Notes: generated by a model from the letters alone, not told the origin. DNA of 64,000 nucleotides from Paramoeba atlantica (GCA_977017575.1 CDRNVI010000140.1:186001-250000), one strand, 5' to 3'. Shown: positions 285 to 62,432, counted from the stretch's first letter. Numbers and translations are program-made.

Positions 285-722
285 TCAATATTTCTTTGCT
301 GGTTTGACAATGGAAGTTTGGAGATGTTCTTCAAAATATTTGATGATCTTATTTTCCGTGCTTTTACTGACATCTCCCGTCGCTTGAAAATCCCAACGCC
401 ATTCGCAACCCCTTTCTTCCAAACGAAACTCTTTCACTGCCTCCTCTTCAACCACAGAATCTCCACAGTCAACCCAAATGAACAGATATTTTCCCTCCAG
501 TCCATTGAGAAGAGCCACCAATCTCTCAAATTTTTTTACTTCATCTTGAAACACCTCTTCCTCTTTGAAGTCAGCTACAGGTAAGTACAGAAGTCCGTCA
601 AAGAGGTCACCATCAGAGATCTTCTCTTCTGATTTGAAGAAGACTTCTGATGATCTTTGGTTCAAGGAATCGGGGATGTGAGGCCAACCTAAATTCACCA
701 AGACCTTTGGTTTGTCGTCCAT
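285..722 (-). CDS. Uncharacterised ~145-aa alpha/beta protein, KPAK-tail superfamily (subfamily B)
   Basis: Intronless ORF MDDKPKVLVNLGW...RLEERGCEWRWDF...IVKPAKKY*. Clear paralog of 2950-3405 and distant paralog of the 55.9-62.4 kb array (shared L.GLEG, RLEERGC.W and KPAK). Confidence 0.75.
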   Translation of the reverse strand: MDDKPKVLVNLGWPHIPDSLNQRSSEVFFKSEEKISDGDLFDGLLYLPVADFKEEEVFQDEVKKFERLVALLNGLEGKYLFIWVDCGDSVVEEEAVKEFRLEERGCEWRWDFQATGDVSKSTENKIIKYFEEHLQTSIVKPAKKY

Positions 723-951
723 CAACAAACAAAACAAAACAAAAAGGAGAATTGGCAAAACCAAAAACTGAAAAATGAGTTTCGGTTTAGAGCTCTTTTT
801 TAGCCTTTTGAAAATTTTGATTTTGTGGGAAACAAACAAACACTTTCATTCTTCACTTTCATTCTTCACACACTCACACCCACACCTTCTCTTCTTGTTC
901 ACACCCCAGTTAGTTGTGTGCAACACCACACACATACAAAAAAGAAAGAAG

Positions 952-2563
952 ATGGATGAAGAAGAAGAAACTCCAAACGAAGAAACAAAGAAACTATTTG
1001 ATAGTGTCGAGAAGGGAGCTGAAGAACTTGTCAGAGTTCTTCTCCTTGGAAAAGAAAACAAACAATTCAAACTTGATCTCAACTTTCAATTCAAAGACCA
1101 GGTCTTTTTTTTCAACAGTAGACATTTCTCTCTTGTTTCTTCTTTTCTTTTCTTTCTTTTTCGTTTTTTCTTTCTTTCTCTTTCTCTTGTTTTTTTTGCT
1201 TTTATTTTTTTTCCAACTTCTTTTTGTTCAGTATGGAGAGATCACCGCTCTTCACAAAGCTGCTTCCAAAGGATTTAAAGAAATTGTGAAGATTCTTATT
1301 GAACATGGATCCAATGTTGATCTTCAAGATAAAGTTTTGATTTTCTTTTTCTTTTATTTGAATTTCTCATTTTTATTTTTTTTCTTCTTTTTTAAAAAAC
1401 TCCTTTTTGTTCAGGGTGGCTGGACCGCTCTTCACTTAGCTGCTTCAAAAGGATTGAAAGAAATTGTGAAGATTCTTCTTGAACATGGATCCAATGTTAA
1501 TCTTCAAGCTAAAGTTTTGATTTCCTTTTTATTTTATTTTATTTTCTCATTTTTATTTATTTTTATTTATTTGTTGTTTAATTGTTGGTTCCTGATGTGT
1601 TGTGTGTGATAATTTGTTTTGTTTTGTTCTTTTTTCACAACTTTTTTTTGTTAAGGGTGGCCGGACCGCTCTTCACTTTGCTGCTCAGTGTGGTTTTGAA
1701 GAAGTTGTGAAGATTCTTATTAAACACGGATCCAATATCGATCTTCAAGATCAAGTTTTGATTTTATTTTATTTTCTGATTTTTATTTATTTGTGGTTAA
1801 TTGTTAGTTGTTCACGTTAGTTCTTGGTGTGTTGTGTGTGATAATTTATTTTATTTTATTCTTTTTTAACAACTTCTTTTGTTAAAGAAAGGCTGGACTG
1901 CTCTTCACATGGCTGCTCAGAAAGGATTTGAAGGAATTGCGAAGATTCTTATTGAGCATGGATCCAATGTTGATCTTCAAAATACAGTTTTGATTTTCTC
2001 ATTTTCATATTTTGTTTTCTCATTTTTTTAAATATGTTGTTATTAATTGTTGATTGTTCATGTTGGTTCTGATGGTTGTGTGGTATTTTGTTTTGTTTTA
2101 TTCTTTTAACAACTTCTTTTTGTTAAGTATGGAAGTACTGCTCTTCACAAAGCTGCTAAGAATGGTTCTAAAGAAATTGTGACGATTCTTATTGAACATG
2201 GAGCCAGTATTCATCTTCAAAATGAAGTTTTGATTTTTTTCTTTCTTATTGGGAGAATTGAGGAGAAGGATGGGGTTGGAGTGGTTCTTATACTTTCTTT
2301 TCTTTCTTTTTTTATTAGGCTGGTGAAACAGTCCTTGATGTTGCAAAAGATCAGAGCATTGTTGAATTTATCACCCAATTGAAGGTTTCATTTTTCTCTC
2401 CTTTTTTTTGAAAACATTTTTTCTCTTTTTCTTTCAATTTTCAATTTTCTTTTTCTTTTTTTTGTTGAATATTTAATTGAGTACGAATGATCTCATATTC
2501 TTTTTTCTTTTTGGTTTGCAGGGACGAACAATCAAACCAGCTCAAATAAAAAAAGAAAATTAA
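952..2563 (+). CDS. Ankyrin-repeat protein, 8 exons, tail GRTIKPAQIKKEN
   Basis: Exons 952-1101, 1232-1333, 1415-1513, 1656-1754, 1888-1986, 2128-2226, 2319-2384, 2522-2563. Five middle exons each encode one G.TALH.AA..G..EIVKILIEHG.NV.LQ ankyrin repeat. All introns GT-AG, phase 0. Confidence 0.9.
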
Positions 2564-2949
2564 AAAATTTTGAGAATTTGAGAATTTGAGAATAGAGTTG
2601 TTGTGGCGGAGGGGGAGAGAGGGAGGGAGGGAGAGAAGAAAGAGAACAATTTTTCAATATTTACCCCATTGAGAAAAGGAGTGACCAATTTCTCAAATTT
2701 TTTGATTTCTAGAAGTGATTGTTGTGCCTTCCTCTTGCAGAATTAATAAGCAGAAGGGATGCACAGGAGCCCATCAAAAAGCAGCCACTCTCAGAAATAT
2801 CCTCCTCTTGCTCTTTCTGGTGTTCAAAAGGAGAATCACTTTGGAAAAATTCCGAAGTATGTTTTGACCTTTATTTTGTTTTGTTCACTCCGAAAACTTC
2901 TTGCTTGATTATTTGAAGACCTCAGTCCAGACTTTTTTTTTGTTTTTGA

Positions 2950-3405
2950 TCAGCCTTTCTTCGCTGGTTTGACCACGCAATATTGGAGACGTTCTTCAAA
3001 ATATTCAACAATCTTCTTTTCCATACTTTCATTGGTTTCTCCTTTCTCTTGAAAACCCCAAAACCAGTCACAACCCCTTTCTACCAAACGGAATCCTTTC
3101 ACTGTCTCCTTTTCGAACATACGATCAGCATAATCAACCCCAAGAAACAAACATTTTCCCTCAAGTCCATTGAGGAGAGTGGCTAATTTCCCAAATATTT
3201 CGATTTCGTCTTGTAATACCACAGGTGGTTTCCCCTGACGAAGACAAAAGTCTTCCGCAGGTAAGTACAGGAGTCCATCGAAGTAGTCACTCTCAGATAT
3301 TTCTTCTTCTGGTTGGAAGATGATCTTTGAGGACCTACTGTTCAATTCTGTTGAAATGTGTACCCAACCCCGATTCACTAACACTTTTGGTTTCTCATCG
3401 TCCAT
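2950..3405 (-). CDS. Uncharacterised 151-aa protein, KPAK-tail superfamily (subfamily B)
   Basis: ORF MDDEKPKVLVNRGW...FRLVERGCDWFWGF...VVKPAKKG*, paralog of 285-722. Confidence 0.8.
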   Translation of the reverse strand: MDDEKPKVLVNRGWVHISTELNSRSSKIIFQPEEEISESDYFDGLLYLPAEDFCLRQGKPPVVLQDEIEIFGKLATLLNGLEGKCLFLGVDYADRMFEKETVKGFRLVERGCDWFWGFQEKGETNESMEKKIVEYFEERLQYCVVKPAKKG

Positions 3406-3562
3406 TCAAAAAAAAAAGATAATAATGAAGAGGCCAAAAAAACAAAATTGCAACACAACACCGAAAACAGAAAAGAAAGATTTTCTTTAGAGCCCTTTTT
3501 TTAGCCTTTTTGTTTTCTCTTTTTTTTTGCTTTTCACTTTTGGCCACACAAAAACAAAAAAA

Positions 3563-4045
3563 ATGGAAAGAGGAGAACCGCAGCATCAAAGAGCCGGTTC
3601 TGATCCTCATCCAAACCAACAAACACCACCAAAAAGGAGTGGTGGAATCTTTGTTTTGGTCATCTTTCTGGGGCTTATTTGTTTGGCTTTGGGATTTTGT
3701 TTGTTCATTCTGTGGTTGATTGGATGGCGAGTCCTTTTTTCTCTGTTTCTCGTTCTGACATTGATCTTCTGTCGAAAAATCATGCCGTCTCCTCTGATGC
3801 TCTTTAGTATTTTCTTTGTGATTTGGTTACAGTTGTACTTTTATTTCTCCGATTGGGAATTCACTTCTTTCTTCTGTGGGATAACTTTTGTTGGGGGAGC
3901 AATTATCAACTGGAAACTTCTCGTTGTGACTCTGGAAGTCCTTGAAATCATCGGTTTTGTCGGAGTGATTGCAACTGGAACACGGCTTTTAGCGATTTGC
4001 AGAATTGGTCCAAAGAAGATCGCACAACATGTTCAAGGGGGATAA
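3563..4045 (+). CDS. Hypothetical multi-pass membrane protein (~160 aa)
   Basis: ORF from MERGEPQHQ; polar N-terminus followed by 4-5 long hydrophobic segments; composition more mixed than the surrounding introns. Confidence 0.6.
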   Translation: MERGEPQHQRAGSDPHPNQQTPPKRSGGIFVLVIFLGLICLALGFCLFILWLIGWRVLFSLFLVLTLIFCRKIMPSPLMLFSIFFVIWLQLYFYFSDWEFTSFFCGITFVGGAIINWKLLVVTLEVLEIIGFVGVIATGTRLLAICRIGPKKIAQHVQGG

Positions 4046-4070
4046 CCGTTGACTCTCCTCTCTCCATCCG

Positions 4071-4552
4071 TCATCTTCTCTTGGTAAAAGAGGGTTGATG
4101 CAGGGGGATCTTTCCGAAGAAAGTGATAAAACTGAACATTTGTGAAAACAAAAGGACTTCTGGGGCGGGTTCTTGTCCTCTTCCATAGCGAGTTGAGATC
4201 AAACTTTTCACGATGCCCTGCTCATTGAGAACCTTTTGAAGATTTTCTTCCGTCAAATGAAACTCTTCTTTCAAAAGAAAGAGAAAGACGAGGATCAACT
4301 TATATTTAATTGGAAAAGACTCATTTCCTTCTTTTTGATGTCCTCATGAGAGATGTTGGTGCAGAAAAATAACAAATCAAAAAACGTGAACAGGATAAAA
4401 TCTCTGAGTGAGTTCGAGAAAATCAAAAATAAAACGAAAACAAAACAAAAAAAAATGTTCCCCCTCAAGGAATTGAACAGCCAAACTCGCGTCATTTTGT
4501 CTCCAGAGAGTGCAGCGAAATCCTCCGCCTTCCTTATTTGGTCAATGGCCAT
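4071..4552 (-). CDS. Hypothetical protein, exon structure unresolved
   Basis: Protein-like segments MAIDQIRKAEDFAALSGDKMTR... and ...HLTEENLQKVLNEQGIVKSLISTRYG... in adjacent ORFs; splice junctions not securely assigned. Confidence 0.3.
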
Positions 4553-4667
4553 TTGACCCTTTTTTTCTCGTTTTTCATGTGAGTCTTCTTGTCTATCTTG
4601 TTCTTTTTTGGGAGGAATCCTTCTCTTGTTGTTTTTGTTTTTTATTTCGCTTCAAACCCGTTCGAAA

Positions 4668-5055
4668 ATGTCAGGCAGAGGAAAAGGTGGGAAAGGGCTT
4701 GGAAAAGGGGGTGTCTATCGTCATCGGAAGGTTCTTCGTGATAATATCCAAGGGATTGGAAAGCCAATGATTAAAAGGCTCGCTCGTCGTGGTGGTGTCA
4801 AACAGCTTTCAGGTTTTGATTGATTTTTTCTTTCTCTTTTCAAGGCAAGAGTTGCGTTTTTTGAGTATTCGTTCAACCCAAGGTCTTATTTATGAAGAAA
4901 TTCGATCCGTTTTGAAACAATTCTTGGAAACAATCATCAGAGACGCTGTCGTGTATACTGAACACGCAAGAAGAAGGACAGTTCAACCTGTTGATATTAT
5001 TTGTGCTCTTCGAAGAAATAATCGAACTCTTTATGGTTTTGGAACTTACGTTTAA
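4668..5055 (+). CDS. H4: Divergent histone H4 with one intron
   Basis: [28 protein letters not shown]...[11 protein letters not shown], 70-nt intron 4813-4882, then [15 protein letters not shown]...[10 protein letters not shown]. Colinear with canonical H4. Confidence 0.95.
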
Positions 5056-5268
5056 GAGAAAAAATATCTGAGTTGAAAAAGGGAAGAAACCCCTTGCAGT
5101 TTATTCAAAAAGGGGAATAAAAAAGAAAGATTGAGAGGACAAATGAATGAATTTCAAAGAACAAATTCCATGTTGTCCAAAAACTCAAAAAAGAAAAGGA
5201 TGCAACATTTTTTGAAAGAAAAAAATTAGAGAGAGAAAAGGAGGAGGAGAGAAAAATTGCGCTGAGAC

Positions 5269-5397
5269 CTTCTGAAAATGAATCACTTTTTGTTCATGAG
5301 AGAAAGAAAAGAAGTTTTGAAATGGTTGCCAACGAAGACAACATGAAGAATCAATTGTTCTCTTGACAGAATTGTCCCACGTTACTTCAGCAGCCAT
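5269..5397 (-). pseudogene. Orphan copy of exon 1 of the SPRY gene at 49073-49951
   Basis: MAAEVTWDNSVKRTIDSSCCLRWQPF...FQK plus donor and part of intron 1, near-identical to 49823-49951. Similarity is lost at about 5200 and no exon 2 follows. Confidence 0.75.
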
Positions 5398-5632: not shown

Positions 5633-8600
5633 ATGGACGTTTGTTTCTCTTTCTCTTTTTCTTTTTCTTGTTTTCTTTCATTTGAAATTCTTTGATCCCC
5701 TTTCCTTTGTTTCCTCTGTTTTTTTTTTCTCCTTTTTATCTTCCCAACCTTCTCTCCAACCCGTCTTTTCTCATCTCTTTCTCTCTCCTCTCTCCTCAAC
5801 AAAAACAAAAAAACAGGATCATCAACTAATAAGAAAGATTGAAAGAGATGATCATGAATTGGAGGAGGCCGATTTGCGTTTTAAAATGTTGGGCAATGAT
5901 GGATGTCAACGTATTGCAAAGGTTTCTTCTCTCTCTTTTCTCTCTCTTTTCTCTCTCTTTTCCCTCTCCTTTCTCTCCTTTCTCTCTTTCTCTTTCTATC
6001 TAAAGGTGGTGAATCTCTCTTTTGGTCTTATTATTCCCCGATGTCTCTCTTTCTCTCATTTCTCTCTCTTTTCTCTCTTCTCTCTCCCAAAGTGGTTCAA
6101 TCTACCAATTTTTTTTCTTTTCTCTTTTCTTTCTCTTTCTTTCTTCCACCACCCCTCCTTCTTTTTCTCCTTCTTTTTTCTCTTTCTTTTATTAAAAGAT
6201 CTAATTTGTTTGGAATTGGTGTAGGCACTTGAGACAAATACACATCTGAGGAGACTGGTTTTGACAAATAATGAAATTGGAAATCGTAATTTTTTTTTCT
6301 TTTTTTCTTTTTTTCTTTTTTTTTTTCATGATTTTTGTTGTTATTAATTAATCATGACTTTTTTAAAAGTAAGATTATCTTCTTTTTCTTAAATTCGTTT
6401 TTTTTTGTTCGATTTTGTTTCTTTATTATTTATTTATTCTTTCTTTCTTTCTCTTTCTTTCTTTCTTTCTCTTCTTTCCCCTACTCTTTTCTCTTCTTTG
6501 TAGATGGTTGCAAATATTTAGGAAAGGCACTCATAAAAAATTATGCTTTGAAATCACTTGATCTTTCTTTTAACCCCAATATTACTGATAAAGTCTCTTT
6601 TCTTTTCTTTCTTTCCCTTTTCCTTTCCTTCCCTTCCCTTTTTTTTCCTTTTCTTTCTTTTCCTTCTCTTTCTTTTCCTCCTCTCTTTCCTTTTCCTTCT
6701 TTTTAATCAATATTTTTCTTTGCAGGGAGCAACTTTTCTATTAAATGCTCTGGATAAAAATTTCACACTCACTCAACTTATTTTGTTATTTAACAAGCAA
6801 ATATCTTCTGTATGTTTTTTGTATTCTTTACTCTTTCCTCTTTCCTCTTTCTCTTCTCTTCTCTTCTCTTTCTCATTTATATCTTTTAATGCCACTCCTT
6901 CTACTACTAATCTTTTCAAATGAATAGGGAGTAACAAAACAAATCAAAACATGTTTAGATCGAAATCTAGATGCTCCACAACACACACGTTCAAAGAAAG
7001 GAGAAAAAGATCGAGATGAAAAAAAGAAGAAAGAGAAGAAGAAGGCCAGACACGCAACGACACATGGGGATTTGGGAAAGGCTGATGAGATGGTAATACT
7101 TTTTTAATAATCTTTTTTAATAATCTTATTTAAGAATCATTATTATTAATAATCTTATTTTTTTTTAAAAAAATACTTTTTTTTCATGAGTTTTTTAAAA
7201 TATCTAATTTTTTTAGAATAATCAGAAAATATAAATCAGAAAATATAAAGGGGCCACATAAAAATATCATAAAAATTAAAAGTAATAACAAAAATGATTA
7301 CAAGAATCGAATCGAATCTTCTTCTTTTTCTCAATTTTTTCTCTTTTCAGGCAGTAAAAATATTAACATCAAAACTCGAAAAAGCAGAAGAGAGAGAAAA
7401 AGAATATTTAAAGAAAATAGAAGAATTGGAAAAGAAATTGAAAAATCAAACGAGTTCTGAAACATCGAGCCCTCCTTTGGCTTCTTCTTCTCCTTCTTCT
7501 TCTTCTGCCTTTGGTTCTTTTTCGGAGATTGAGGTTTTTCTTTTTTGAATTTCTTTTGTCTTTTTCTTTTTTTTTTTGTGAAATGTTGAAACTTTTCTTT
7601 CTTTTATTTTGTTTTCTCATGGTTCACACAAAAAACAAATAGAAAAGAAAGAATAAAGAATTTAAAATCAACTTTAGCAATCTTCTCGTCACCGAAAAAT
7701 TAGCTGCAACAGGTTTTGTTTCTCTCTTCACGAAAAAGGATCATTCAGACACAATTTAAAGGATTAACAATCCAAATTAATTTTTTTTATTTAGATAAAA
7801 ATGAAATAAAATATTCATTACTATTCTTTTCTTTAATTCACAAAAAATAAAAATAATTTTTTTTTTTTTTAAAAAACAAAAATCATTTTTTCAAAAAAAG
7901 GAGGAAGTAACGCAGGAGTATATGCATGTTATGTAGATGGGTGGCAATGTGCAATGAAAGAATTGACAATACAAAGTGCTAGATTGGAGAAAAGTCAGAT
8001 TAATGGATTTGAATCTGAGATTGGTTTTTTTTTTTGTTTTTTCTCTTTTTTTTTTCTTTCTTGTCTCAATTTCTTTTTTTTTCTTTCTCTTCTTTGTTCT
8101 ATCTCTTTCTCTTTCTCTCTTTCCCTTTTTTTTTTTCGAAAAGGACTCTTGGAACAATTGCCGCATAACAATCATATCGTGAAATATCTCCATCATGAGC
8201 GAGCAAAAGATAAGATTCGTCTTTACATGACAAAATATAGCAGCACTTTGGTATCTCTTTTTATTATCTTTCTCTTTTTCTTTCTCATTCTCTTTCTCTT
8301 TTTCTTTTTCTTTTTCTTTCTCTTTCTCTTTCTCTTTCTCTTTTTCTTTCTCTGTCTTTCTTCTCATATTTTGGCAGGCAATTGAAATCAAAAAGAGAAG
8401 AGTGGACATTGAAGCTGGAGATGATGATCCTTTCTCCCCTCAAGAAATTATGTGTTTTATGTTAGATTTGACTGCTGGTCTTGGATTTTTACATGAGAGG
8501 AATATTATCCATCGAGATTTAAAGAGTGACAACGTTTTTGTCACTTTGAATGAGAGGAAAGAAATTATGACTTTGGCAATTGGTTTGTTGTTTTTAATTG

Positions 8601-9745: not shown

Positions 9746-10267
9746 ATGGATGACGAGGAACAATTTGAACTGAGAATCTTGGTGAACTCCAATGAGCGTC
9801 GTTTTCACGACGCAGCCATTTTATCTCTGAACAGTCAAACAAAAAGAATTCTCTTTGTTGAAAGGAAAACAAGTTTGGGAGGTTCCTTTGAAGGACTTCT
9901 CTTCCTCAAGAATGACTGGAACTACAACAAGCAAGAGCAAGAGAAAGATTTGGATGAATTTGAGAGTTGTGTGGAAGATGTTGGTGGGCTCGAAAACAAA
10001 CTGGTTCTTCTTTGGGGTGATCTTCAATATGAAAAATCCCCGCTCGAAAAACGATTGAAAATGTTCAGCGGGTGTACATGGACTTGGATTTTCAACTATG
10101 AATTTCCAAAAGGAGGTCAAGGTTTTTTCTTTTTCTTGTCTTTTTCTTTTCTTTTGTGGTCGAAGGATTCCATGGTCTTCTGAAGAAGTTAAACAGAACA
10201 AAAAATAATCGATTTTTTTGAACAATCGATATCCTCTGATATTAAACCGGCGCGAAATCTGAGATGA
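9746..10267 (+). pseudogene. KPAK-tail superfamily (subfamily C), frameshifted copy
   Basis: Paralog of 10822-11304. The DIKPARNLR* tail lies in a different frame from the body, with an in-frame TAA at 10190 just upstream, consistent with indels relative to the paralog (or an assembly error). Confidence 0.6.
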
Positions 10268-10821: not shown

Positions 10822-11304
10822 ATGGATGATGAGGAACAATATGAACTGAGGATCTTGGTGAACTCCAATGATCGTCGTGTTGATGATTTGTTGATTTCAT
10901 CTCTGAACAGCAAAACAAAAAGAATTCTCTTTGTAGAAAGGGAAACAAGTTTGGGAGGTTCCTTTGATGGACTTCTCTTTCTCAAGAATGACTGGGTCTC
11001 CGATTATGGAGATTTCGATAAAAAAGAGCAAGAGAAAGATTTGAATGAATTTGGAAGTTGTGTGGAAGACGCTGGTGGGCTCGAAAACAAACTGGTTGTC
11101 CTCTGGGGCGAAAGTCAATATGAAAAATTCTTTTTCGAAAAACGATTGAAAAATGTGAGCGGGTGTGCATGGAGTTGGGTTTTCGACAGAGAAGTATTTC
11201 TTCGTTGGGGGAGAAAATCTCTTGAAACAGAAAAAAAGGTCATCGACTTTTTTGAACAATCGATCTCCTATGATATTAAACCTGCGAAATCTGAGAAAGA
11301 ATGA
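10822..11304 (+). CDS. Uncharacterised 160-aa protein, KPAK-tail superfamily (subfamily C)
   Basis: ORF MDDEEQYELRILVNSN...GGLENKLVVLW...SGCAWSW...DIKPAKSEKE*. Tandem duplicate of the 9.4-10.3 kb unit including upstream DNA. Confidence 0.8.
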   Translation: MDDEEQYELRILVNSNDRRVDDLLISSLNSKTKRILFVERETSLGGSFDGLLFLKNDWVSDYGDFDKKEQEKDLNEFGSCVEDAGGLENKLVVLWGESQYEKFFFEKRLKNVSGCAWSWVFDREVFLRWGRKSLETEKKVIDFFEQSISYDIKPAKSEKE

Positions 11305-11531: not shown

Positions 11532-13329
11532 TTAATTTTCTTTCTTTACTCGAACTGGTTTTACCGTTCGTCCCTGCAACCAAATAATTATTATTCAACA
11601 AAAAAAAGAAAAAAAAATTGAAAATCAAAAAATGAAAGAAAAAAAAAGAGAATGTCAAAAAAAAAAAAAAACCTTTAATTGTATGATAAGTTCAACAATG
11701 TTCGGATCTTTTGTAACATCAAGCGCTGTTTTACCAGCCGAACACAAAAAAAAAAGAAAAGAAAGTTTCTTAAGATAAAAACTTTATCTTCGAAAACTTT
11801 ATCTTGAAGACTAACGTTGGATCCACGTTCAACAAGAATCTTCACTATTTCTTCAAAACCTTTCTCAGCAGCATAGTGAAGAGCGGTCCATCCATACTTT
11901 AACAAAAAGAAATTGTGAAAAAAACATAACAAAATAAATATCACACAACACAACCATTCACAATCAACACATGAAACAACAAACAATGAACCACAACAAC
12001 AAACAAAAAACGAGAAAAAAAAATCTAAAATGAGACAAGCCAACAAATCAAAAAAAAAATATGAAATCAAAAGAAAATCAAAACGTCATTTTGAAGATCA
12101 ACATTGGACCCACGTTCAACAAGAATCCTCACAACTTCTTCAAAACCTTTGGAAGCAGCTAAGTGAAGAGGAGTCCATCCACACTTTAACAAAAAGAAAT
12201 GGTTAAAAAAAGAACTCAGATAAAAACAAAAGAAAATAAAATAAAATAAAATGAAAATCAAACTTTATCTTGAAGATCAACATTGGATCCATGTTCAATC
12301 AGAACTTTCACAATTTCTCCAAACCCTTTGAAAGCAGCTTTGTGAAGGGGCATCCATCCATCCTGAACAAAAAGAAGTTGTTTTAAAAAAGAACAAAACA
12401 AAACAAATCAAAAAAAATGAAAATCAAAACATTGGTTTGAAGATGAACATCGGATCCATATTCAAGAAGAATCTTCACAATTTCTTCAAAACGGAAGTGA
12501 GCAGCTACGTGAAGAGCGGTCAAGCCATACTTAACAAAAAGAAGAAAATGAGAAAAACAAAGAAAAAAGGAAAATCAAAAAAAAAATGAAAATCAAAACA
12601 TTGGTTTGAAGATGAACATTGGATCCAGATTCAAGAAGAATCTTCACAATTTCTTCAAAATCTTTCTCAACAGCTTTGAGAAGAGCGTTCTCTCCAAACT
12701 TAACAAAAAGAAGTTGTCAAAAGAAACAAAAAAATATCGTCACAAACACATCAAGAATAACGTGAAACAACCAACAAATCAACAAATAAAAATGAGAAAA
12801 ACAAAATGAAAAAATGAAAATCAAAACTTTGTTTTGAAGATGAACATTGGCTCCATGTTCAATAAGAATTTTCACAACTTCTACAAAACCTTTCTCAGCA
12901 GCTTTGTGAAGAGCGGTCCATCCATTTTTTAACAAAAAGAAATTGTTAAAAAAAAAAGAACAAAAACAAAATAAATATCACAACACAACCATTCACAATC
13001 AACATGACCACAACACAAATAAACCCTCACAAAAGAAATTTTGTTAAAAAACAAAAAAAAAAACAAGAGAGAAAAGGAAGGAAGGAAGGGAAGAACAAAA
13101 AGAAAAAGAAAAGAGGGAAAAAGAGAGAGAAAATTTTTTTTTGAATTAATTTAATTCAAAAATGATTTTGAAAAAAAAAAACCTCGTCTTGGAATTGAAA
13201 GTTGAGATCGAGTTTGAATTGTTTGTTTTCTTTTCCAAGAAGAAGAGCTTTGACAAGTTCTTCATCTCCATTCTCAACACCTTCAAAAAGGTTCTCTGTT
13301 TCTTTGTTTGGAGTTTCTTCTTCTGCCAT
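11532..13329 (-). CDS. Ankyrin-repeat protein (paralog of 952-2563), 9 exons, tail GRTVKPVRVKKEN; two non-AG acceptors
   Basis: Exons 13183-13329, six 99-nt repeat exons (12828-12926, 12600-12698, 12431-12529, 12264-12362, 12085-12183, 11798-11896), 11673-11738, 11532-11573. Confidence 0.8.
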
Positions 13330-13914: not shown

Positions 13915-15347
13915 ATGGACGTTTGTTTCTCTTTCCTTCTTTTTCTTTTTCTTGTTTTTTTGTTTTCTTTCGTTTGCAATTCTTTGATCCCCTTTCCCTC
14001 TGTTTTTTTTGAGAGAACTATGTTTGCACCTATGGCGTTTACGTTTTGCACCTCCAAAAGTTTTTTTTTCTTCATTTTTTTTGCCACCAAAAAAAGTTTG
14101 CTTTGTTTGGTGGACACACCTCACGGAGAAGAGAGAAGACTTTTTTTTTTCTTTTCCTGAAAAGAGTTTGTTTTTTCTCTTCTTCGTGTTGTCAATGTTT
14201 TTAGCTTCTTTTTCAATTGACTGTTTGGGTTTTGAGGAAGGGGGTGAATCTTTTGAAAGGGAAAGCATAGAGGTGCAAATGAAAAACCCAAAACATTGAT
14301 AGGTGCAAACGTAAACGTGATAGGTGCAAACATAGTTCTCTCTTTTTTATTATCCTTTTTATCTTCCCAATCCTTCTCCTTCCTCGCTTCTCTTTCTCTC
14401 CTCTCAACAAAAAAACAACAGAATGATGAATTAATAAGAAAGATTGAAAGAGATGATCCTGAATTGGAGGAGGCTGATTTCCGTTTTAAACTGTTGGACA
14501 ATGATGGATGTCAACGTATCGCAAAGGTTTCCTCTCTCTCCCTTTTCTCTCTCTCTTTTCTCTCCCCAAAAGTGCTCTTTTTTAAAAGATCTGATTTGTT
14601 GGAATTGGTGTAGGCACTTGAGACAAATACACATCTGAGGAACTTGGTTTTGGCAAGTAATAAAATTGGAAATGGTATTTTTTTTTCTTTTTTTTTTCAT
14701 TATCTTTCTTTAATCAAAATTTAATTTTACTTTTTTGTTCAATTTATTCTTCGATTTATTTATTCTTTCTTTCTCTCTTCCTTTCTCTTCTTTCTCTTCT
14801 TTCCCTTCTCTTTTCTCTTCTTTGTAGATGGTTGCAAATATTTAGGAGAGGCACTCATAACAAATTATGCTTTGAAATCACTTGATCTTGCTTTTAACCC
14901 CAGTATTACCAATAAAGTCTCTTTTCTTTTCTTTCTTTCCCTTTTCCTTTCCTTCCCTTCCCTTCCCTTTTTTTATCTTTTAATCCCAATATTACCGATT
15001 AAATTTCTTTTCTTCCTCCTCTTTCTGCCCTCCTCTCTTTCCTTTTCCTTCTTTTTAATCAATATTTTCTTTGCAGGGAGCAACTTTTCTGTTAAATGCT
15101 CTGGATAAAAATTTCACACTCACTCAACTTGTTTTATTATTTAACAACCAAATAACTTCTGTATGTTTTTTTGTATCTTTCCTCTTTCCTCTTTTCTCTT
15201 TCTTCTCTTTCTCATTTATATCTTTTAATGCCACTCCTTCTACTACTAATCTTTTCAAATGAATAGAGAGTAACAAAACAAATCAAAACATGTTTAGATC
15301 GAAATCAAGATGCTTTCTCTCCAGATATTAAACCTGCCAAAAGATGA
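13915..15347 (+). CDS. LRR-only protein, paralog of the N-terminal half of the LRR-kinase, ending DIKPAKR
   Basis: Six exons with the same positions and phases as 5633-6990; last exon RVTKQIKTCLDRNQDAFSPDIKPAKR*. Confidence 0.85.
14011..14342. mobile_element. MITE-like element with ~42-bp imperfect TIRs in intron 1 of the LRR gene
   Basis: Left end gagagaactatgtttgcacctat..gtttacgttttgcacct is the reverse complement of right end aggtgcaaacgtaaacgtgataggtgcaaacatagttctctc. T-run flanks; the paralogous intron near 5715-5745 lacks it (empty site). Confidence 0.8.
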
Positions 15348-15587
15348 TCACCGATGGTTTTTCAACTTTTATAAACAGTCGGAAAATCCTTTTGTTTCAG
15401 AGTTTTCTGAGTTTCTTTCTTGTTTTGAAGCAAGGTAAATTTGAGAGAAATCTGAGTAGCTTTATAACGGTTGAATCTGAGTCGAAATCAACTTGAAATC
15501 AACAATCAACATCAACAAAAAGACCGACACCTTTGGTTTCAGTATTCCAGAGGCTTCCCTTCTCTCGCAATGATCTCACACCACCCC

Positions 15588-49072: not shown

Positions 49073-49951
49073 TCATCTTTTGGCAGGTTTAACATTTACA
49101 ACATCATCTCTTTTCATAATTGCCTTGTGTCCACTTGAAGCAAAACTAACTGCTGGATACAATGGTTGTGAAATATCTTCTTTTGTTAATTTAAACGCAA
49201 CTCCTCGATCAACTCCATTATCACAAAACCGAATTTCTCTGAGTTGTTGTTGGAACAAAATTCAGAAAATGAAACTTGAAAAACAAAAACTAAATTCCAA
49301 ACCTTTCATTTGCAGAATATTCCATTTGCACAATGAAGAAATTTTTCTCGTTTGAAACTTCAAAAAAGATGTCAACACAAATAACCCCCCACAGTTTCAG
49401 AACAAAAACAAGAAAGTTTAAAAACAAAAAACAAGAAAGAAAACCTTCTTCCCAGATAGGACTGTAGGGAACCAACTTTTTGGAATGGTTCAATTTTCCT
49501 TCCACACTCCAACCCCATGATTTTTTTGTTGATCCTAAAAGGACAGGATAGCCGTTCCCTTTCCTTTTCATTTGAGAAAAGAGAGGGATAAGAGAAATTA
49601 GAAAAATGAAAAAGAGAACCGTGGAGAGGTTGATCAGAAATGCCAATTAGATAAGCTCTTCGAAAAATTGGTTGGCCATTAATGCGAACCCCAAATTCAA
49701 TTCGGAAATTTGAGGAAAAATCAAGTGGTTCTTCCCCAATTGCAACTTTTGTATCAGACTTTCAACATTTGAAAGAAAAAAATTAGAGAGAGAAAAGGAG
49801 GAGAGAAAAATTGCGCTAAAACCTTCTGAAAGTGAATCACTTTTTGTTCATGAGAGAAAGAAAAGAAGTTTTCAAATGGTTGCCAACGAAGACAACATGA
49901 AGAATCAATTGTTCTCTTGACAGAATTGTCCCACGTTACTTCATCAGCCAT
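49073..49951 (-). CDS. SPRY/B30.2-domain protein ending VKPAKR
   Basis: Exons give AIGEEPL, YLIGIS, LLGSTKKSWGW, IRFCDNGVDRGVAF, LYPAVSF (typical SPRY strands); ~5 exons. Confidence 0.78.
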
Positions 49952-54375: not shown

Positions 54376-54416
54376 TTGGAAATCAGTTTCTTTGAAATAA
54401 AGAATCTTCGCCCGTC

Positions 54417-55871: not shown

Positions 55872-56324
55872 CTATTTTTCTCTTTTTGCTGGTTTGAGAA
55901 CAATAGTTTGTGTATTCTCTTCAAAGAATCGATCCATCTTCGGAATAACCTTCTCATTGCCCCCAGCCCCAAACCCCCAAACACATCCTCTTTCTTCCAA
56001 TCTCAACCTTTTCACCATTTCTTCTTTCAACTCTCCATCTCTTTCCTCAACCCAAACATACAGAACCACCCCTTCAATCCCACCAAGACGAGAGACATCT
56101 TTCTCGAAAAGATCAATTGCTTCTTCAAAATACTGTTCTTCTTCAGAAAGGGTTTCTGGTGGGTAGAAAAGAATCCCTTGGCAATATTTAAAATCAGAAT
56201 CCAGATCCGAAAAGACTAAACTCAATTCTTTTTTTTTGTTTTCTTCGTTCAACCATGAAACAATATCCTTGTCACCAATCACCAAAATTTTTGGTTTTGA
56301 TTCACTTTCATCAATATCTGCCAT
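55872..56324 (-). CDS. KPAK-tail array gene D1 (150 aa)
   Basis: MADIDESESKPKILVIG...VSRLGGIEGVVLY...RLEERGCVW...VLKPAKREK*. Confidence 0.85.
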   Translation of the reverse strand: MADIDESESKPKILVIGDKDIVSWLNEENKKKELSLVFSDLDSDFKYCQGILFYPPETLSEEEQYFEEAIDLFEKDVSRLGGIEGVVLYVWVEERDGELKEEMVKRLRLEERGCVWGFGAGGNEKVIPKMDRFFEENTQTIVLKPAKREK

Positions 56325-56516
56325 CGTCTTTTTTCGTCCTCCCACCCCACAAGAAAGAAGAGAAAACAAGAAAAAGAATGAAGGGTTGAGTCTCAGTCTG
56401 GTTTTCCAGGACAATAAGGAATGTAGAAACCCTAATAAACAAGAAAAGGAGAGAAGAACAGAGAAAAACAACAGAAGAGAAAAGGAGAAAAAAAAGGTTC
56501 TCAGGAAAAAACGCAT

Positions 56517-56741
56517 TCACTTTTTCTCAAGGTTTTTTTTTGTCTCGTTCTTTTCCAAACTTTGGAAGAGTTCTTGATCTTCTATTTTTTTTCTCTTTTT
56601 TGCTGGTTTGAGATTTGTTTGTGAATTGTCATCAAAGAATTTATGGAACGAACCCGCAACTTTTTCATCTTTTTTCCAACTCTGGATCACGGAAAGAAAA
56701 AAAGAAAAAAGGGGGACAAGCAGCAAAGTTGTTTCAATCAT
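56517..56741 (-). pseudogene. 3' relic or possible 74-aa microprotein carrying the array KPAK tail
   Basis: MIETTLLLVPLFSFFLSVIQSWKKDEKVAGSFHKFFDDNSQTNLKPAKKRKK...; only the last helix and tail match the array genes. Confidence 0.4.
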
Positions 56742-56937
56742 CAAATTAAAAATCTTTTTCTCTTCAAAAGTCAAAAAACGAAAAGCTTTTAATTCATTTC
56801 TTCGAACAATCAAAGAGAAAAAATGGAAAGAACTTTTAGAGGAGCAAGAAAAGGAGAGAGAAGTGTTTTCGAGTTCATATTTTTGTGTGGGCGGCTCTCT
56901 TCTATGAGAATTCTTGAAGATTATTTTTCTCCATCTT

Positions 56938-57390
56938 CTATTTTTCTCTTTTTGCTGGTTTGAGAACAACAGTTTGTATATTCTTTTTAAAGAATTGATC
57001 CATCTTCGGAATAATCTTCTCATTGCCCCCAGCCCCAAACCCCCAAACACATCCTTTTTCTTTTAATCTCAAACTTTTCACCATTTTTTTTTTCAATTCT
57101 TCATCACTTTCCTCAACCCAAACATACAGAACCACCCCTTCAATCCCACCAAGACGAGAGACATCCTTCTCGAAAAGATCAATTGCTTCTTCAAAATGTC
57201 CTTCTTCAGAAAGGGTGTCTGATGGGAAGAAAAGAATCCCTTGGCAATCTTTGAAATCAGAATCCAGATCCGAAAAGACAAAACTCAATCCATTTAGTTT
57301 TTTTTTTTTGTTGAACCATGAAACAAGACCCTCGTCACCACCAATCACCAAAATTTTTGGTTTTGATTCACTTTCGTCAATATCCGCCAT
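56938..57390 (-). CDS. KPAK-tail array gene D2 (150 aa)
   Basis: Intact paralog ending VLKPAKREK*. Confidence 0.85.
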   Translation of the reverse strand: MADIDESESKPKILVIGGDEGLVSWFNKKKKLNGLSFVFSDLDSDFKDCQGILFFPSDTLSEEGHFEEAIDLFEKDVSRLGGIEGVVLYVWVEESDEELKKKMVKSLRLKEKGCVWGFGAGGNEKIIPKMDQFFKKNIQTVVLKPAKREK

Positions 57391-57639
57391 CGTCTTTCTT
57401 CCTCCTCCCCCACAAGAAAGAGAAAACAGAAGGGAGGGTTGGATGTTCGTCCTCCAAGACAACAAGGAATTACGAAAGAAGGAGATTAAAAAGCAAAGAA
57501 GAGAAAGAGAAAGAGAGAAAGAGAGAAAGAGAAGGAAACGAAAAAAAGGTTTTTCTGTTTGGGGGAAAAACGCAATATTTTTTCAGTTTTTTCAGTTTTT
57601 TCAGTTTTGTCTCCCTCTTTCCAAACTTTGGAAGAGATC

Positions 57640-58057
57640 TCAATCTTCTCTTTTTTCTCTTTTTGCTGGTTTGACAATCACTTGTAAATTCTCTTTAAAG
57701 AATTGATCCATCTTCGGAATAATCTTATCATTGCCCCCAGCCCCAAACTTCCAAACACATCCTCTTTCTTCCAATCTCAACCTTTTCACCATTTCAAACA
57801 TACAGAACCACCCCTTCAATCCCACCAAAACGAGAGACAGCTTTCTCGAAAAGATCAATTGCTTCTTCAAAATGTCCTCCATAAAAAAGGAAGGATGGTG
57901 GGGAGAAAAGAATCCCTTGGCAATCTTTGAAATCAGAATCCAGATCCGAAAAGACAAAACTCAATTCTTTTTGTCTGTTCAACCTTCCAACAATCCACGT
58001 ATCACCACCAATCACCAAAATTTTTGGTTTTGATTCACTTTCATCAATCTCCGCCAT
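57640..58057 (-). pseudogene. KPAK-tail array gene D3, frameshifting internal deletion
   Basis: Split over ORFs 57794-58120 and 57640-57957; the segment between VVLYV and MVKRLRL is deleted. Confidence 0.75.
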
Positions 58058-58293
58058 CGTCTTTCTTCGTCCCACAAGGAGAGAACACAAAAGAAAAAGA
58101 ATCAAGGGTTGGTTTTCCAAGACAACAAGGAATTAAGAAACCCCAAAAAAAACAATAGAAGGTTAGAAAAGCAACCAAAAGAAGAGAAAGAAAGAGAGAA
58201 AAAGGAGGAAAAACGAAAAAAAAGTTTTTTCTGTTGTTTGGGGAAAAAGCTTCTTTTTCAGTTTTTCAAGTTTTTCTTCTGTTTTGTCTCACT

Positions 58294-58731
58294 CTATTTT
58301 TCTCCTTTTGCTGGTTTGAGATTCGTTTGCAAAGTCTCATTAAAGAATTTATCCATTCTTGGAGCAATTTCTTGAATGAACCCAGCTCCAAACTCCCAAA
58401 CACACCCTCTTTCTTCCAATCTCAACCTTTTCACCATTTCCTCTTTCCGCTTCTGATCACGTTTACCAACCCAAATATACAGAACCACCCCTTCAATCCC
58501 ACCAAGACGAGAGACATCTTCCTCGAAAAGATCAATTGCTTTTTCAAAATCTCCATAAGAAAGGAGGGATGGTGGGGAGAAAAGAATCCCTTGGCAATCT
58601 TTGAAATCAGAAGACGAATTCGAAAAGACAAAACTCAATTCTTTTTGTTTGTTCAACAATCCAACAAGCTGTGGGGCATCACAAATCACCAAAATTTTTG
58701 GTTTTGATTCACTTTCATCAATATCCGCCAT
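58294..58731 (-). CDS. KPAK-tail array gene D4 (145 aa)
   Basis: Intact paralog ending LKPAKGEK*. Confidence 0.85.
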   Translation of the reverse strand: MADIDESESKPKILVICDAPQLVGLLNKQKELSFVFSNSSSDFKDCQGILFSPPSLLSYGDFEKAIDLFEEDVSRLGGIEGVVLYIWVGKRDQKRKEEMVKRLRLEERGCVWEFGAGFIQEIAPRMDKFFNETLQTNLKPAKGEK

Positions 58732-58920
58732 CGTCTTTCTTCCTCCTCTCCCCCCGACGAGAAAGAAGAGAAAAAGAAGGGAGGGTTGAGTGTTAGTCCT
58801 CCAAGACAGCAGCAAGGAATGAAGAAACCCCAAAAAGAAGGATAGCGGAATAGCAGAGAAAAGTCCTCCAAGACAACAAGGAATTATGAAGAAGGAGAGA
58901 AGAGAAAGAGAGAAAGAGAG

Positions 58921-58951
<31 letters not shown>

Positions 58952-59036
58952 AAGAGAGAAGGAAACGAAAAAAAGATTTTTCTGTTTGGGAAAAACACAA
59001 TATTTTTTCAGTTTTTTTCCAAACTTTGAAAGGATC

Positions 59037-59483
59037 TCAATCTTCTCTTTTTTCTCTTTTTGCTGGTTTGAGATTCGTTTGCAAAGTCTCATTAAAGAAT
59101 TTATCCATCATTGGAGCAATTTCTTGAAGAAGCCCAGCTCCAAACCCCCAAACACACCCTCTTTCTTCCAATCTCAACCTTTTCACCATTTCCTCTTCCC
59201 ACTTCTGATCAGTTTTAGCAACCCAAATATACAGAACCACCCCTTCAATCCCACCAAGACGAGAGACATCTTCCTCGAAAAGATCAATCGCTCCTTCAAA
59301 ATGTCCATAAGAAAGGACGTTTTGTGGGTAGAAAAGAATCCCTTGGCAATCTTTGAAATCAGAATCCAGATCCGAAAAGACAAAACTCAATTCTTTTTGT
59401 CTGTTCAACCTTCCAACAATCCGCTTATCACCACCAATCACCAAAATTTTTGGTTTTGATTCACTTTCATCAATATCCGCCAT
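59037..59483 (-). CDS. KPAK-tail array gene D5 (148 aa)
   Basis: Intact paralog ending LKPAKREKRED*. Confidence 0.85.
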   Translation of the reverse strand: MADIDESESKPKILVIGGDKRIVGRLNRQKELSFVFSDLDSDFKDCQGILFYPQNVLSYGHFEGAIDLFEEDVSRLGGIEGVVLYIWVAKTDQKWEEEMVKRLRLEERGCVWGFGAGLLQEIAPMMDKFFNETLQTNLKPAKREKRED

Positions 59484-59721
59484 TGTCTTTCTTCGTCCTC
59501 TGCCCCCCCCCGACGAGAAAGAAGAGAAAAAGAAGGGAGGGTTGAATGTTAGTCCTCCAAGACTACAAGGAATTTATGAAAGAAGGAGAGAAGAGAAAGA
59601 GAGAAAGAGAAGGAAAAACGAAAAAAGGTTTTTTTGGGGGAAAAACACAATATTTTTCAGTTTTTTCAGTTTTTTCAGTTTTTCAGTTTTGTCTCCCTCT
59701 TTCCAATCTTTGGAAGAGATC

Positions 59722-60159
59722 TCAATCTTCTCTTTTTTCTCTTTTTGCTGGTTTGACAATCGCTTGGAAATTTTCTTGAAAGAATTGATCCATCTCCGGG
59801 ATAATCTCAGACCCAGCCCCAAACTCCCAAACACATCCTCTTTCTTCCAATCTCAACCTTTTCACCATTTCCTCTTTCAAACATGCATCACCTCGAGTAA
59901 CCCAAATATACAGAACCACCCCTTCAATCCCACCAAGACGAGAGACATCTTCCTCGAAAAGATCAATCGCTTCTTCCAAATGTCCTTCTCTATAAAGGTA
60001 CGATGGTGGGCAGTAAAGAATCCCTTGGCAATCTTTGAAATCAGAAGGCGAATTCGAAAAGACAAAACTCAATTCCTTTTTGTTCAACCATTCAACTACC
60101 AAGGTAAAACCAAACACCAAAATTTTTGGTTTTGATTTACTTTCATCAATGTCCACCAT
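59722..60159 (-). CDS. KPAK-tail array gene D6 (145 aa)
   Basis: Intact paralog ending VKPAKREKRED*. Confidence 0.85.
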   Translation of the reverse strand: MVDIDESKSKPKILVFGFTLVVEWLNKKELSFVFSNSPSDFKDCQGILYCPPSYLYREGHLEEAIDLFEEDVSRLGGIEGVVLYIWVTRGDACLKEEMVKRLRLEERGCVWEFGAGSEIIPEMDQFFQENFQAIVKPAKREKRED

Positions 60160-60374
60160 CGTCTTTTTTCGTCCTCCAAGAAAGGAGAGAAAACAAAAGA
60201 AAAAGAACCAAGGGATGGAATTTCCAAGACAACAAGGAATTAAGAAAACAAAAGAACAGAGAAAAGCAACAACCGAAGAAGAAAGAGAGAAAGAGAGAAG
60301 GAAAAACGAAAAAAAGTTTTTTCTGTTTGGGGGAAAAACGCAATATTTTTCAGTTTTTTCTGATTTGTCTCCCT

Positions 60375-60818
60375 CTATTTTTCTCTTTTTGCTGGTTTGA
60401 GATTTGTTTGTGAATTGTCATTAAAGAATTTATCCATTATTGGAGCAATTTGTTCATCAGACCCAGCTCCAAACCCCCAAACACATCCTCTTTCTTCCAA
60501 TCTCAACCTTTTCACCGTTTCCTCTTCGAATCCCCCATCCCTTTCATCAACCCAAACAAACAGAACCACCCCTTCAATCCCACCAAGACAAGAGACATCT
60601 TCCTCGAAAAGATCAATTGCTTCTTCAAAATAATATTCTTCTACAGAAAAGGATTCTTTTGGGTAGAAAAGAATCCCTTGGCAATCTTTGAAATCAGAAT
60701 CCAGATCTGAATAGACAAAACTCAATCCCTTTTGTTTGTTCAACCATGGAACAATGTACTCCTCACCACCAATCAACAAAATTTTTGGTTTTGATTCACT
60801 TTCATCGACGTCTGCCAT
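60375..60818 (-). CDS. KPAK-tail array gene D7 (147 aa)
   Basis: Intact paralog ending LKPAKREK*. Confidence 0.85.
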   Translation of the reverse strand: MADVDESESKPKILLIGGEEYIVPWLNKQKGLSFVYSDLDSDFKDCQGILFYPKESFSVEEYYFEEAIDLFEEDVSCLGGIEGVVLFVWVDERDGGFEEETVKRLRLEERGCVWGFGAGSDEQIAPIMDKFFNDNSQTNLKPAKREK

Positions 60819-61088
60819 CGTCTTTCTTCGTCCTCCAAGAAAGAAGGGGCTGAGTGTGAGTCCTCCAAGATAACAAGGAATTACAAGGGAGGGGTTTGAG
60901 TGTTAGTCTTCCAAGACAGCAGCAAGGAATGAAGAAACCCCAAAAAAGAAGAAGGAGAGAAGAACAGATAAAAGTAACAACAACAGAAGAAGAGAAAGAA
61001 AGAGAGAAAGAGAAGGAAAAACGAAAAAAAGTTTTTTCTGCTGTTTGGTGAAAAAACCTTCTTTTTCAGTTTTCTGTTTTGTCTCGCT

Positions 61089-61523
61089 CTATTTTTCTCT
61101 TTTTGCTGGTTTGAGATTTGTTTGTGAATTGTCATTAAAGAATTTATCCATTCTTGGAGCAAACTGTTCGTCAGACCCAGCTCCAAACCCCCAAACACAT
61201 CCTCTTTCTTCCAATCTCAACCTTTTCACCATTTCCACTTCGAATCCCCAATCACTTTCATCAACCCAAATATACAGAACCACCCCTTCAATCCCACCAA
61301 GACGAGAGACATCTTTCTCGAAAAGATCACTTGTTTTTTCAAGAGAACATCCTTCAGAAAAGGTTTGTGGTGGGTAGAAAAGAATCCTTTGGCAATCTTT
61401 GAAATCAGAAGACGAATTCGAATACACAAAACTCAATCCATCTTGTTTGTTCAACCAGCTCTGAATGTACTTGTCACCGAGCACCAAAACTTTTGGTTTT
61501 GATTCACTTTCATCATCCGCCAT
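61089..61523 (-). CDS. KPAK-tail array gene D8 (144 aa)
   Basis: Intact paralog; upstream sequence shared only with D9. Confidence 0.85.
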   Translation of the reverse strand: MADDESESKPKVLVLGDKYIQSWLNKQDGLSFVYSNSSSDFKDCQRILFYPPQTFSEGCSLEKTSDLFEKDVSRLGGIEGVVLYIWVDESDWGFEVEMVKRLRLEERGCVWGFGAGSDEQFAPRMDKFFNDNSQTNLKPAKREK

Positions 61524-62000
61524 TTGTTGAAAAACCCCAACCTTCCAAAACCAAAAACTCTTTCTCTACCAAAAGAGAACCAAAAAACAAAACTATTTCT
61601 CCAACAAAAAAGAAATTCAAAAAATGGTTTTTGGCGGTTTAAATTATTGGGTAAGAGTTTTAGAGTGAGTGATACAGGATCACTGTACCACTCAAAAAGT
61701 ACAGAATAGGAAAAAAGGGAAAAACAGAAAAACATAGAGAAGCGAGGCTCCTGAGATCTACAAATTTCACCGATGAAAGCAGGTAGAGAGGAACAAAATC
61801 ACTTCGTACAGGAGAACCACAATGATAAGTATTTCTGTGAGAAGTGGCTTGTTCGGAGACAAGAAGAAATAAAGGGGGGGGTCGTGGGTGGGAGAAGAAG
61901 AATAAAGAGAAAGAAAGAGAGAGTTTGGCTTTTTTTTCTGCTGTTGGGGAAAACGCTTCTTATTCAGTTTTCTGTCAACTTTTTTCTGTTTTGTCTCACT

Positions 62001-62432
62001 CTATTTTTCTCTTTTTGCTGGTTTGAGATTTGTTTGTGAATTGTCATTAAAGAATTTATCCATTATTGGAGCAAACTGTTCGTCAGGCCCAGCCCCAAAC
62101 TCCCAAACACATCCTCTTTCTTTCAATCTCAACCTTTTCACCATTTCCTCTTTCAACTCTCCATCACTTTCATCAACCCAAACATACAGAACCACCCCTT
62201 CAATCCCACCAAGACGAGAGATATCTTCCTCGAAAAGATCAATTGCTTCTTCAAGAGAACCTCCTTCAGAAAAGGCTAGTGGTGGGTAGAAAAGAATCCC
62301 TTGACAATCTTTGAAATCAGAAGACGAATTCGAATACACAAAACTCAATCCATCTTGTTTGTTCAACCAGCTATGAATGTACTCGTCACCAAGCACCAAA
62401 ACTTTTGGTTTTGATTCACTTTCATCCGCCAT
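62001..62432 (-). CDS. KPAK-tail array gene D9 (143 aa)
   Basis: Intact paralog ending LKPAKREK*. Confidence 0.85.
   Translation of the reverse strand: MADESESKPKVLVLGDEYIHSWLNKQDGLSFVYSNSSSDFKDCQGILFYPPLAFSEGGSLEEAIDLFEEDISRLGGIEGVVLYVWVDESDGELKEEMVKRLRLKERGCVWEFGAGPDEQFAPIMDKFFNDNSQTNLKPAKREK

Follow-up and report, generated by a model that had tools for sequence, protein, structure and literature searches.

A C-terminal KPAK tail on unrelated protein families of Paramoeba atlantica: a candidate docking peptide

Few rules of cell biology are as useful as the short C-terminal labels read on many proteins by one receptor, such as SKL, KDEL, CAAX, and the C-degrons, and new ones are seldom found from sequence alone. 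A common C-terminal element on unrelated scaffolds is also the hallmark of the SOCS-box proteins (ASB ankyrin, SPSB SPRY, Rab40 GTPase, SOCS SH2, and WSB WD40 proteins) and of the poxviral ANK-PRANC proteins, in which a folded helical module of ~40 aa, containing a BC box and Cul box in SOCS proteins or an F-box, binds Elongin BC or Skp1. We analyzed a 64,000-nucleotide stretch of the Paramoeba atlantica genome (GCA_977017575.1, CDRNVI010000140.1:186001-250000; hereafter, the window), for which an earlier note, made from the sequence alone, had proposed that one C-terminal KPAK tag is shared by four unrelated protein families. On the sequence evidence below, eight or more unrelated families carry the tag; most are small proteins that bind ligands or other proteins, and many of the genes lie in tandem arrays. 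Its consensus is [ILVF]-K-P-A-K-[RK]-x(0-5)-stop, in which the proline and alanine are nearly invariant. A shared C-terminal label is a known kind of element; the KPAK label itself, its set of carriers, and its spread on mini-exons appear to be new.

Six-frame translation of the whole window yielded 18 matches to [ILV]KP[AV][KRQ], starting at positions 294, 2531, 2959, 10241, 11275, 11550, 15327, and 49079, with ten more between 55884 and 62013. All but one of the 18 are one to six codons ahead of a stop, the exception at 56598 being a frameshifted relic, and the scan found no match inside the long open frames or in the non-genic frames of the window. Shuffling the window in 500-base blocks (n = 300) gave a mean of 0.65 matches, of which 0.25 were near a stop, versus the 18 in the real sequence. 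The C-terminal enrichment over shuffled background that the earlier note anticipated was therefore borne out, the motif being far above the shuffles and almost wholly stop-proximal. The tag positions it had reported (2531, ~11560, 15330, 49080, and those of a small alpha/beta family) were all correct in the six-frame scan, and its tally of ~17 genes plus 2 relics held as a pattern though not as an exact count, our recount being ~15 intact tagged genes and 3 relics (10241, 56598, and a truncated copy at 57661). It had also described the housekeeping neighbors as tagless, and they are: the PiT/PHO4, epimerase, and Vps26 genes, whose identities were established by Pfam, carry no tag, and neither do the CHD1, GST, H4, and CNBP-like genes, named here as in that note, the window holding no further motif match in any frame. 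The window is AT-rich (GC ~0.34), and its genes are split into many short exons; in the ankyrin genes, for instance, each repeat has an exon of its own.

Genome-wide counts came from DNA pattern searches of the 45.7-Mb assembly, in which the AT-rich, intron-rich contigs numbered C139 and above are considered amoeba-like. The bare 12-mer coding for KPAK was not enriched across the genome (565 matches versus 549 in the reversed control) but its stop-adjacent forms were, so the signal is specific to the position just before the stop. The pattern AARCCNGCNAAR+NNN+TRR, encoding KPAK, one further codon, and a stop, occurred 73 times in the whole genome versus 27 in the reversed control. The AT-rich contigs held 57 of these 73 and just 5–6 matches to the out-of-frame form (+NNNN+TRR), a difference of ~10-fold. 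With two intervening codons (+6N) the genome-wide count was 79 versus 22 reversed, contributing ~62 further stop-adjacent sites in the AT-rich contigs, while three intervening codons gave 26 matches, mostly from the window's own array, versus 42 reversed. KPAK immediately before the stop was rare in the AT-rich contigs (5 sites). Exact KPAK tails number at least ~135, spread over >25 contigs, and many tagged genes lie in tandem arrays (C148, C156, C188, and C190). Together, the shuffles and the reversed and out-of-frame controls rule out chance or composition as the source of the motif.

A 227-kb sample of amoeba-like DNA gave the shape of the consensus: 65 of its 73 six-frame KPAK instances were ≤6 codons from a stop, compared with ~20% for generic KxxK. 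This sample was picked via the motif itself, and the unbiased test is given by the genome-wide counts. In 63 of the 65 stop-adjacent instances KPAK was preceded by I, L, V, or F, and in 61 it was followed by R or K, with 1, 2, 3, 4, or 6 residues after KPAK. The commonest tail forms genome-wide were KPAKR, KPAKRG, and KPAKRS, each directly followed by the stop. Where K-P-x-K-R-TGA sites were collected from the AT-rich contigs, x was Ala in 34 of 39, and at K-x-A-K-R-TGA sites in the same contigs x was Pro in 34, the main exception being an array in C153 with Ser or Ala. This tandem array (G000:C153:74761-86299) comprises nine genes ending K-S-A-K-R or K-A-A-K-R before the stop, a proline-free variant of the tag.

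Two further groups of matches were set aside. Eight IKPAKR-stop matches in contig C87 (GC 0.49) were taken as chance, each following a 12-codon frame within a repeated, mobile-element-like unit; this unit of 3.5–6 kb (G000:C87:21593-54972; L001, L002) has long intron-free open reading frames (ORFs), and the composition of the contig is unlike that of the window. The repeated AAACCGGCAAAATAG in contigs C1–C85 was discarded as a dispersed repeat, and that repeat, with AAACCGGCAAAATAGCTGA (for example, C75:67525-78822), makes up most of the KPAK-stop matches outside the AT-rich contigs.

The codons of the tag vary between families (Pro CCA, CCT, CCG, or CCC; Ala GCA, GCC, GCG, or GCT), and the DNA flanking it is unrelated from family to family. 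Because the codons differ in this way, we read the constraint as acting at the level of the protein. In multi-exon carriers, the tag is mostly found on a terminal exon of ~10–17 codons, right after a pyrimidine tract and AG. The contigs of run X1 behave like RNA, covering the gene at 285–722 exactly and leaving intergenic stretches empty, and one that reaches window position 2385 runs on as GKTIKPA, the product of a phase-0 splice from the penultimate ankyrin exon to a close paralog's tag exon. A recent event is visible in the LRR gene, which is ~98% identical to the LRR part of a kinase gene (~6175–6964) up to six codons before the tag and unrelated from there on. At this breakpoint (6830–7050 versus 15180–15400), one copy continues into the kinase gene and the other ends FSPDIKPAKR and a stop. 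The tag side starts with the acceptor-like TTCTCTCCAG, which looks like a captured acceptor, and no second copy of the tag side was found in the genome. Mobile DNA carrying the tag was rejected on the basis of this single-copy segment and of the unrelated flanks.

Two other arrangements bear on modularity. A gene in C179 (G000:C179:32874-33577; L030–L033) has four to five tandem terminal exons, each ending TSIKPAKR and a stop, which may be alternative terminal exons. The repeated exon (ending DLDLDWLKGRLDPLGTSIKPAKR and a stop) recurs every 100–300 bases, three of the four gaps being 193 or 300. Long ankyrin paralogs (L008:4534, L008:7993, and L019:5316) carry an internal DGSIKPAKRE, with the motif 49–62 residues from the C-terminus, followed by an acidic and basic extension that includes the nuclear-signal-like stretch KKRKIGDE; a sister gene stops straight after the tag (DGTIKPAKRQ). 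In our reading, genes gain the tag as a self-contained module, in many cases in the form of a terminal mini-exon. The earlier picture of one short motif joined to varied domains is thus sustained by the mini-exons, by the LRR breakpoint six codons before the tag, and by the invariance of K-P-A, which mark the tag as modular and conserved on the protein level.

Our census of carrier families is a sample of fetched loci, with Pfam scans run on single exons or pieces. Ankyrin carriers fall into several subfamilies, recognized as Ank by Pfam. A PH carrier (E = 8e-7) has the tag directly after the C-terminal helix of the PH domain, a SPRY carrier was matched at E = 2e-4 on 49076–49261, under the gathering score, and a 14-3-3-like carrier has a body matched at E = 3e-18 and its tag on the next mini-exon, in phase with two candidate donor sites. 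An LRR carrier was recognized by eye only; Pfam matched neither its single exons nor those of unassigned families at L005, L018, L016, and L020. Cys/His-rich mini-proteins in C164 also carry the tag, as do further families without a domain name (L004/L005/L018, L015/L016, L020, and L012/L019). The mini-proteins (L027–L029; G000:C164:101536-104556 and 260114-263655) follow the pattern C-x-G-x-G-C-x3-H ... C-x2-C-G-x7-H-x2-H-x-C, each then continuing to a tag mini-exon. Carriers look cytosolic, with acidic N-termini and without signal peptides or apparent transmembrane segments. Three of the four families first proposed, namely ankyrin, SPRY, and small alpha/beta, are upheld; for the fourth the tag stands, while its LRR character was seen by eye and is not matched by Pfam. 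To these we add the PH, 14-3-3-like, Cys/His, and further families, so that the attached domains tabulate as Ank, PH, 14-3-3, and SPRY by Pfam, with the Cys/His mini-proteins and the small alpha/beta family besides. The tagged genes and relics of the window itself are collected in Table 1.

Table 1. Tagged genes and relics in the window (positions counted from its first nucleotide)
Feature	Position	Strand	Details
Small alpha/beta gene, 145 aa	285..722	-	Ends IVKPAKKY and stop; tag codons 294-308; RNA-like X1 contig covers 271-719 with zero mismatch
Ankyrin gene 1, terminal mini-exon GRTIKPAQIKKEN and stop	2522..2563	+	Gene body ~950-2385, one ANK repeat per exon; acceptor TTTGCAG just 5'; Ank by Pfam in upstream exons
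Small alpha/beta gene, 151 aa	2950..3405	-	Ends VVKPAKKG and stop
Relic of small-family 3' end	10193..10267	+	...SSDIKPARNLR and stop; 24-codon open frame only, resembles end of gene 10822-11304
Divergent small-family gene, 160 aa	10822..11304	+	Ends DIKPAKSEKE and stop
Ankyrin gene 2, terminal mini-exon GRTVKPVRVKKEN and stop	11532..11573	-	Body up to ~13400; paralog of ankyrin gene 1; Ank by Pfam in exon 12070-12264
LRR-type gene, 3' part, ending ...QDAFSPDIKPAKR and stop	14400..15347	+	Tag 15327-15341; LRR by eye
SPRY gene, 3' exons	49073..49761	-	Ends ...DDVVNVKPAKR and stop; tag 49079-49093; Pfam SPRY on 49076-49261
Small-family tandem array	55872..62432	-	All with [LV]KPAK[RGK]...
Intact genes of the array	55872-56324, 56938-57390, 58294-58731, 59037-59483, 59722-60159, 60375-60818, 61089-61523, 62001-62432	-	
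Truncated array copy	57640-57960	-	5' half lost
Frameshifted array relic, 3' end reading LKPAKKRKKIEDQ...	56517-56612	-	Tag 56598-56612

The ~145-aa alpha/beta family supplies most copies of the tag. It has no Pfam match, an ESM Atlas feature search also returned none, and 29 relatives were found among 1.84 billion representative proteins; by these searches, the family is lineage-restricted. Every full-length relative keeps KPAK near its C-terminus, down to E = 3.5e-4, and an alignment of 24 members has only M1, G48, L50, and K-P-A as invariant columns, with subfamilies 21–38% identical to the first sequence. The AlphaFold2 model is a confident one (pLDDT 82), an alpha/beta fold of five strands whose tail is disordered (pLDDT below 50). 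Closest to it in structure are Arf, Arl, and G-alpha domains (Foldseek E = 3.5e-4, TM 0.5–0.6; VIA Z 9.6–10.2), with CheY-like receivers and flavodoxin folds nearly equal (Z ~9), and the fold searches go no further than a generic GTPase- or flavodoxin-like fold. In this prediction, the three-layer alpha/beta architecture is nearest to that of the P-loop-less pseudoGTPases and Arf/Arl, and the flexible basic C-terminal tail is like that of Ras and Rho proteins. Unlike small GTPases, however, the family has neither a GxxxxGK[ST] P-loop after strand 1 in the alignment nor a Ras/Arf match in Pfam, and its assignment as GTPases is not secure.

We consider it about an even chance (a probability of roughly 0.5) that the KPAK tail, a short linear motif specific to the lineage and selected at the protein level, serves to dock its carriers onto one shared reader. 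The flexible C-terminal tail would expose the KPAK peptide, a single reader acting in trans, be it a receptor, an adaptor, or an enzyme, would bind it, and the cargo bound by each variable domain would then meet one common fate, for example, degradation, transport, or modification. The single reader and these downstream consequences are our inference. Here, the scaffold overlap with SOCS-box proteins is striking (ankyrin, SPRY, and a GTPase-like fold), and both are multigene families. The KPAK element differs from the SOCS and PRANC modules in being disordered and 5–6 residues long, a length that argues against such a module; the tail is far too short for the SOCS-box/PRANC-like version that the earlier note had in mind, and no tagged piece scanned matched a SOCS or F-box profile in Pfam. 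A link from the KPAK tail to a ligase would be purely conjectural. The fuller proposal of an adaptor system seems to us rather unlikely: in it, a germline repertoire of binders (ankyrin, LRR, SPRY, PH, 14-3-3-like, pseudo-GTPase, and zinc mini-proteins) would be linked through one 6-residue tail to one common effector, for example, a ligase, a protease, or a transport receptor. On that proposal, and with as little confidence, the system would be a minimal counterpart of SOCS-box/F-box substrate receptors, perhaps for intracellular surveillance.

Comparison with the classical short signals narrows what such a reader might recognize. Like PTS1 (-SKL), KDEL/HDEL, and KKXX, the KPAK tail is a very short C-terminal peptide on unrelated proteins, sometimes brought by a small terminal exon; unlike them, it has a different sequence and no fixed distance to the end, and it marks binding modules, not organelle enzymes or membrane proteins. 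No tail has the PTS1 end [SAC][KRH][LM], the tails ending instead in R, RG, RS, RD, RM, REK, KKY, KKG, or SEKE, and KKXX/KXKXX spacing, with Lys at -3 and at -4 or -5, fits two ankyrin tails (...KKEN before the stop) only, failing in KPAKR and KPAKRx. The DesCEND C-degrons (-GG, -RG, -R, and -EE) are similarly short and placeable on any protein, and some tagged genes end -R, -RG, or -KG; these degrons, however, consist of the last one to three residues and the free carboxylate, whereas the KPAK block precedes an end that varies. The C-terminus lies at no constant distance from the block, which argues against a PTS1-, KDEL-, or C-degron-type reading with a free carboxylate; such versions of the degron and sorting-receptor ideas raised in the earlier note do not fit a motif 1–6 residues from the end, or 49–62 in some ankyrin paralogs. 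WH2/beta-thymosin motifs consist of an amphipathic helix followed, 4–7 residues on, by L-[KR]-x-[VATIGS]. L-K-P-A matches this last element, and, judged by eye against the consensus, a suitably spaced helix is present in the ankyrins and in the small family; by the same inspection, the LRR, PH, 14-3-3-like, and Cys/His carriers are without a WH2-type helix, and I or V often stands in place of L.

Several points count against a docking peptide, or at least against the breadth of its support. The reader itself and its binding to the tail are putative. Independent acquisitions of the tag are far fewer than genes, many of which are recent tandem paralogs, and we estimate them at 10–15 families. 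The splice of the 14-3-3-like body to its tag exon is a prediction, and the LRR identity was assigned by eye. Codon use in the pooled tags is skewed, with AAA at 90%, CCA at 81%, GCA at 73%, and no GCT, versus 65%, 34%, 31%, and 39%, respectively, in the long ORFs of the window; this skew may reflect shared ancestry, as many of the genes are recent paralogs, yet it leaves some room for constraint at the RNA level. Finally, support from other species is slender. The relatives that were traced belong to a second assembly of this species, in which the L022 DNA is 99.5% identical to the window, apart from one protein, from a metagenome, that ends FKPAKH. Conservation in related genomes, a check that the earlier note had suggested, therefore holds in that full-length relatives keep KPAK, while beyond the species it extends to that one metagenome protein. 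Two metagenome scans and a search with the SPRY terminal exon gave no match. Full-text literature searches (on KPAK-type tails and on Paramoeba/Perkinsela genomics) returned no description of the motif, and the end of IGF-1, ...PLKPAKSA, was taken as a coincidence.

Other explanations of the tail were weighed against docking. It may instead be a processing or modification site: a protease or lysine-modifying enzyme would recognize the block up to K or K-R, and the residues beyond would form a removable extension, as they do in CAAX proteins and the precursors of ubiquitin-like proteins. What matters functionally would then be the mature end or the modified lysine. Like those precursors, KPAK tails have an invariant motif and then a short extension, one that varies in both length (1, 2, 3, 4, or 6 residues, and 49–62 in some ankyrins) and sequence. 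The rarity of KPAK right at the stop fits this scheme, as does the R or K that comes next in 61 of 65 instances, creating a dibasic K-R beside two invariant lysines. Unlike those precursors, the tails are without Gly-Gly, Cys, or any other known processing signature, and cleavage here is hypothetical; carriers that look cytosolic also make secretory dibasic convertases improbable. On balance, we regard processing or modification as unlikely.

We find it somewhat harder to see the tail as a weak basic localization signal, for nuclear import or acidic-membrane binding, that has kept one sequence through common descent. The tail is basic, the c-Myc nuclear signal PAAKRVKLD has a core similar to PAKR, and array members ending K-R-E-K match the minimal monopartite nuclear localization core K-[KR]-x-[KR]. 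That core is present in KPAKREK-type array tails but missed by the commonest forms, KPAKR, KPAKRG, and KPAKRS at the stop. A charge signal would need neither Pro, Ala, nor the hydrophobic residue at -1, yet these are conserved as much as the lysines, which argues against a purely charge-based signal. The long ankyrin paralogs, moreover, have a separate canonical KKRK past the tag, suggesting that the tag is not their nuclear signal.

It is quite doubtful that the tail is a historical accident, a single young terminal exon without function that was spread by exon shuffling and tandem duplication. Such a history would account for the mini-exon structure of the tag, the recent breakpoint that adjoins the tag in the LRR gene, the tandemly repeated terminal exons of the C179 gene, and the heavy clustering of tagged genes in arrays. 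It sits poorly with the invariance of K-P-A over subfamilies at 21–38% identity while neighboring residues changed, with flanking DNA and synonymous sites that differ between families, and with the drift seen in relics that have lost their frame (IKPAR at 10241). An RNA or DNA signal (a termination context, or a 3'-end processing or localization element) that merely translates as KPAK is very improbable, for although codon choice is skewed and the motif always adjoins a stop codon, independent families use CCT, CCG, and CCC and GCC, GCG, and GCT, the distance to the stop varies and all three stop codons are used, the sequence downstream is not conserved, and many recent paralogs largely account for the skew.

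As a docking label, the KPAK tail is a candidate with unusually clean statistics and >100 carriers, and the hypothesis is directly testable by pull-downs with tail peptides and by reporter fusions. The modular exon structure of the tag shows how a label spreads through a genome, and the set of carriers mirrors the substrate receptors of ubiquitin ligases. Fish pathogens occur in the group to which Paramoeba-type amoebae belong, and a lineage-specific system of this kind, if true, could matter for the biology of this amoeba.

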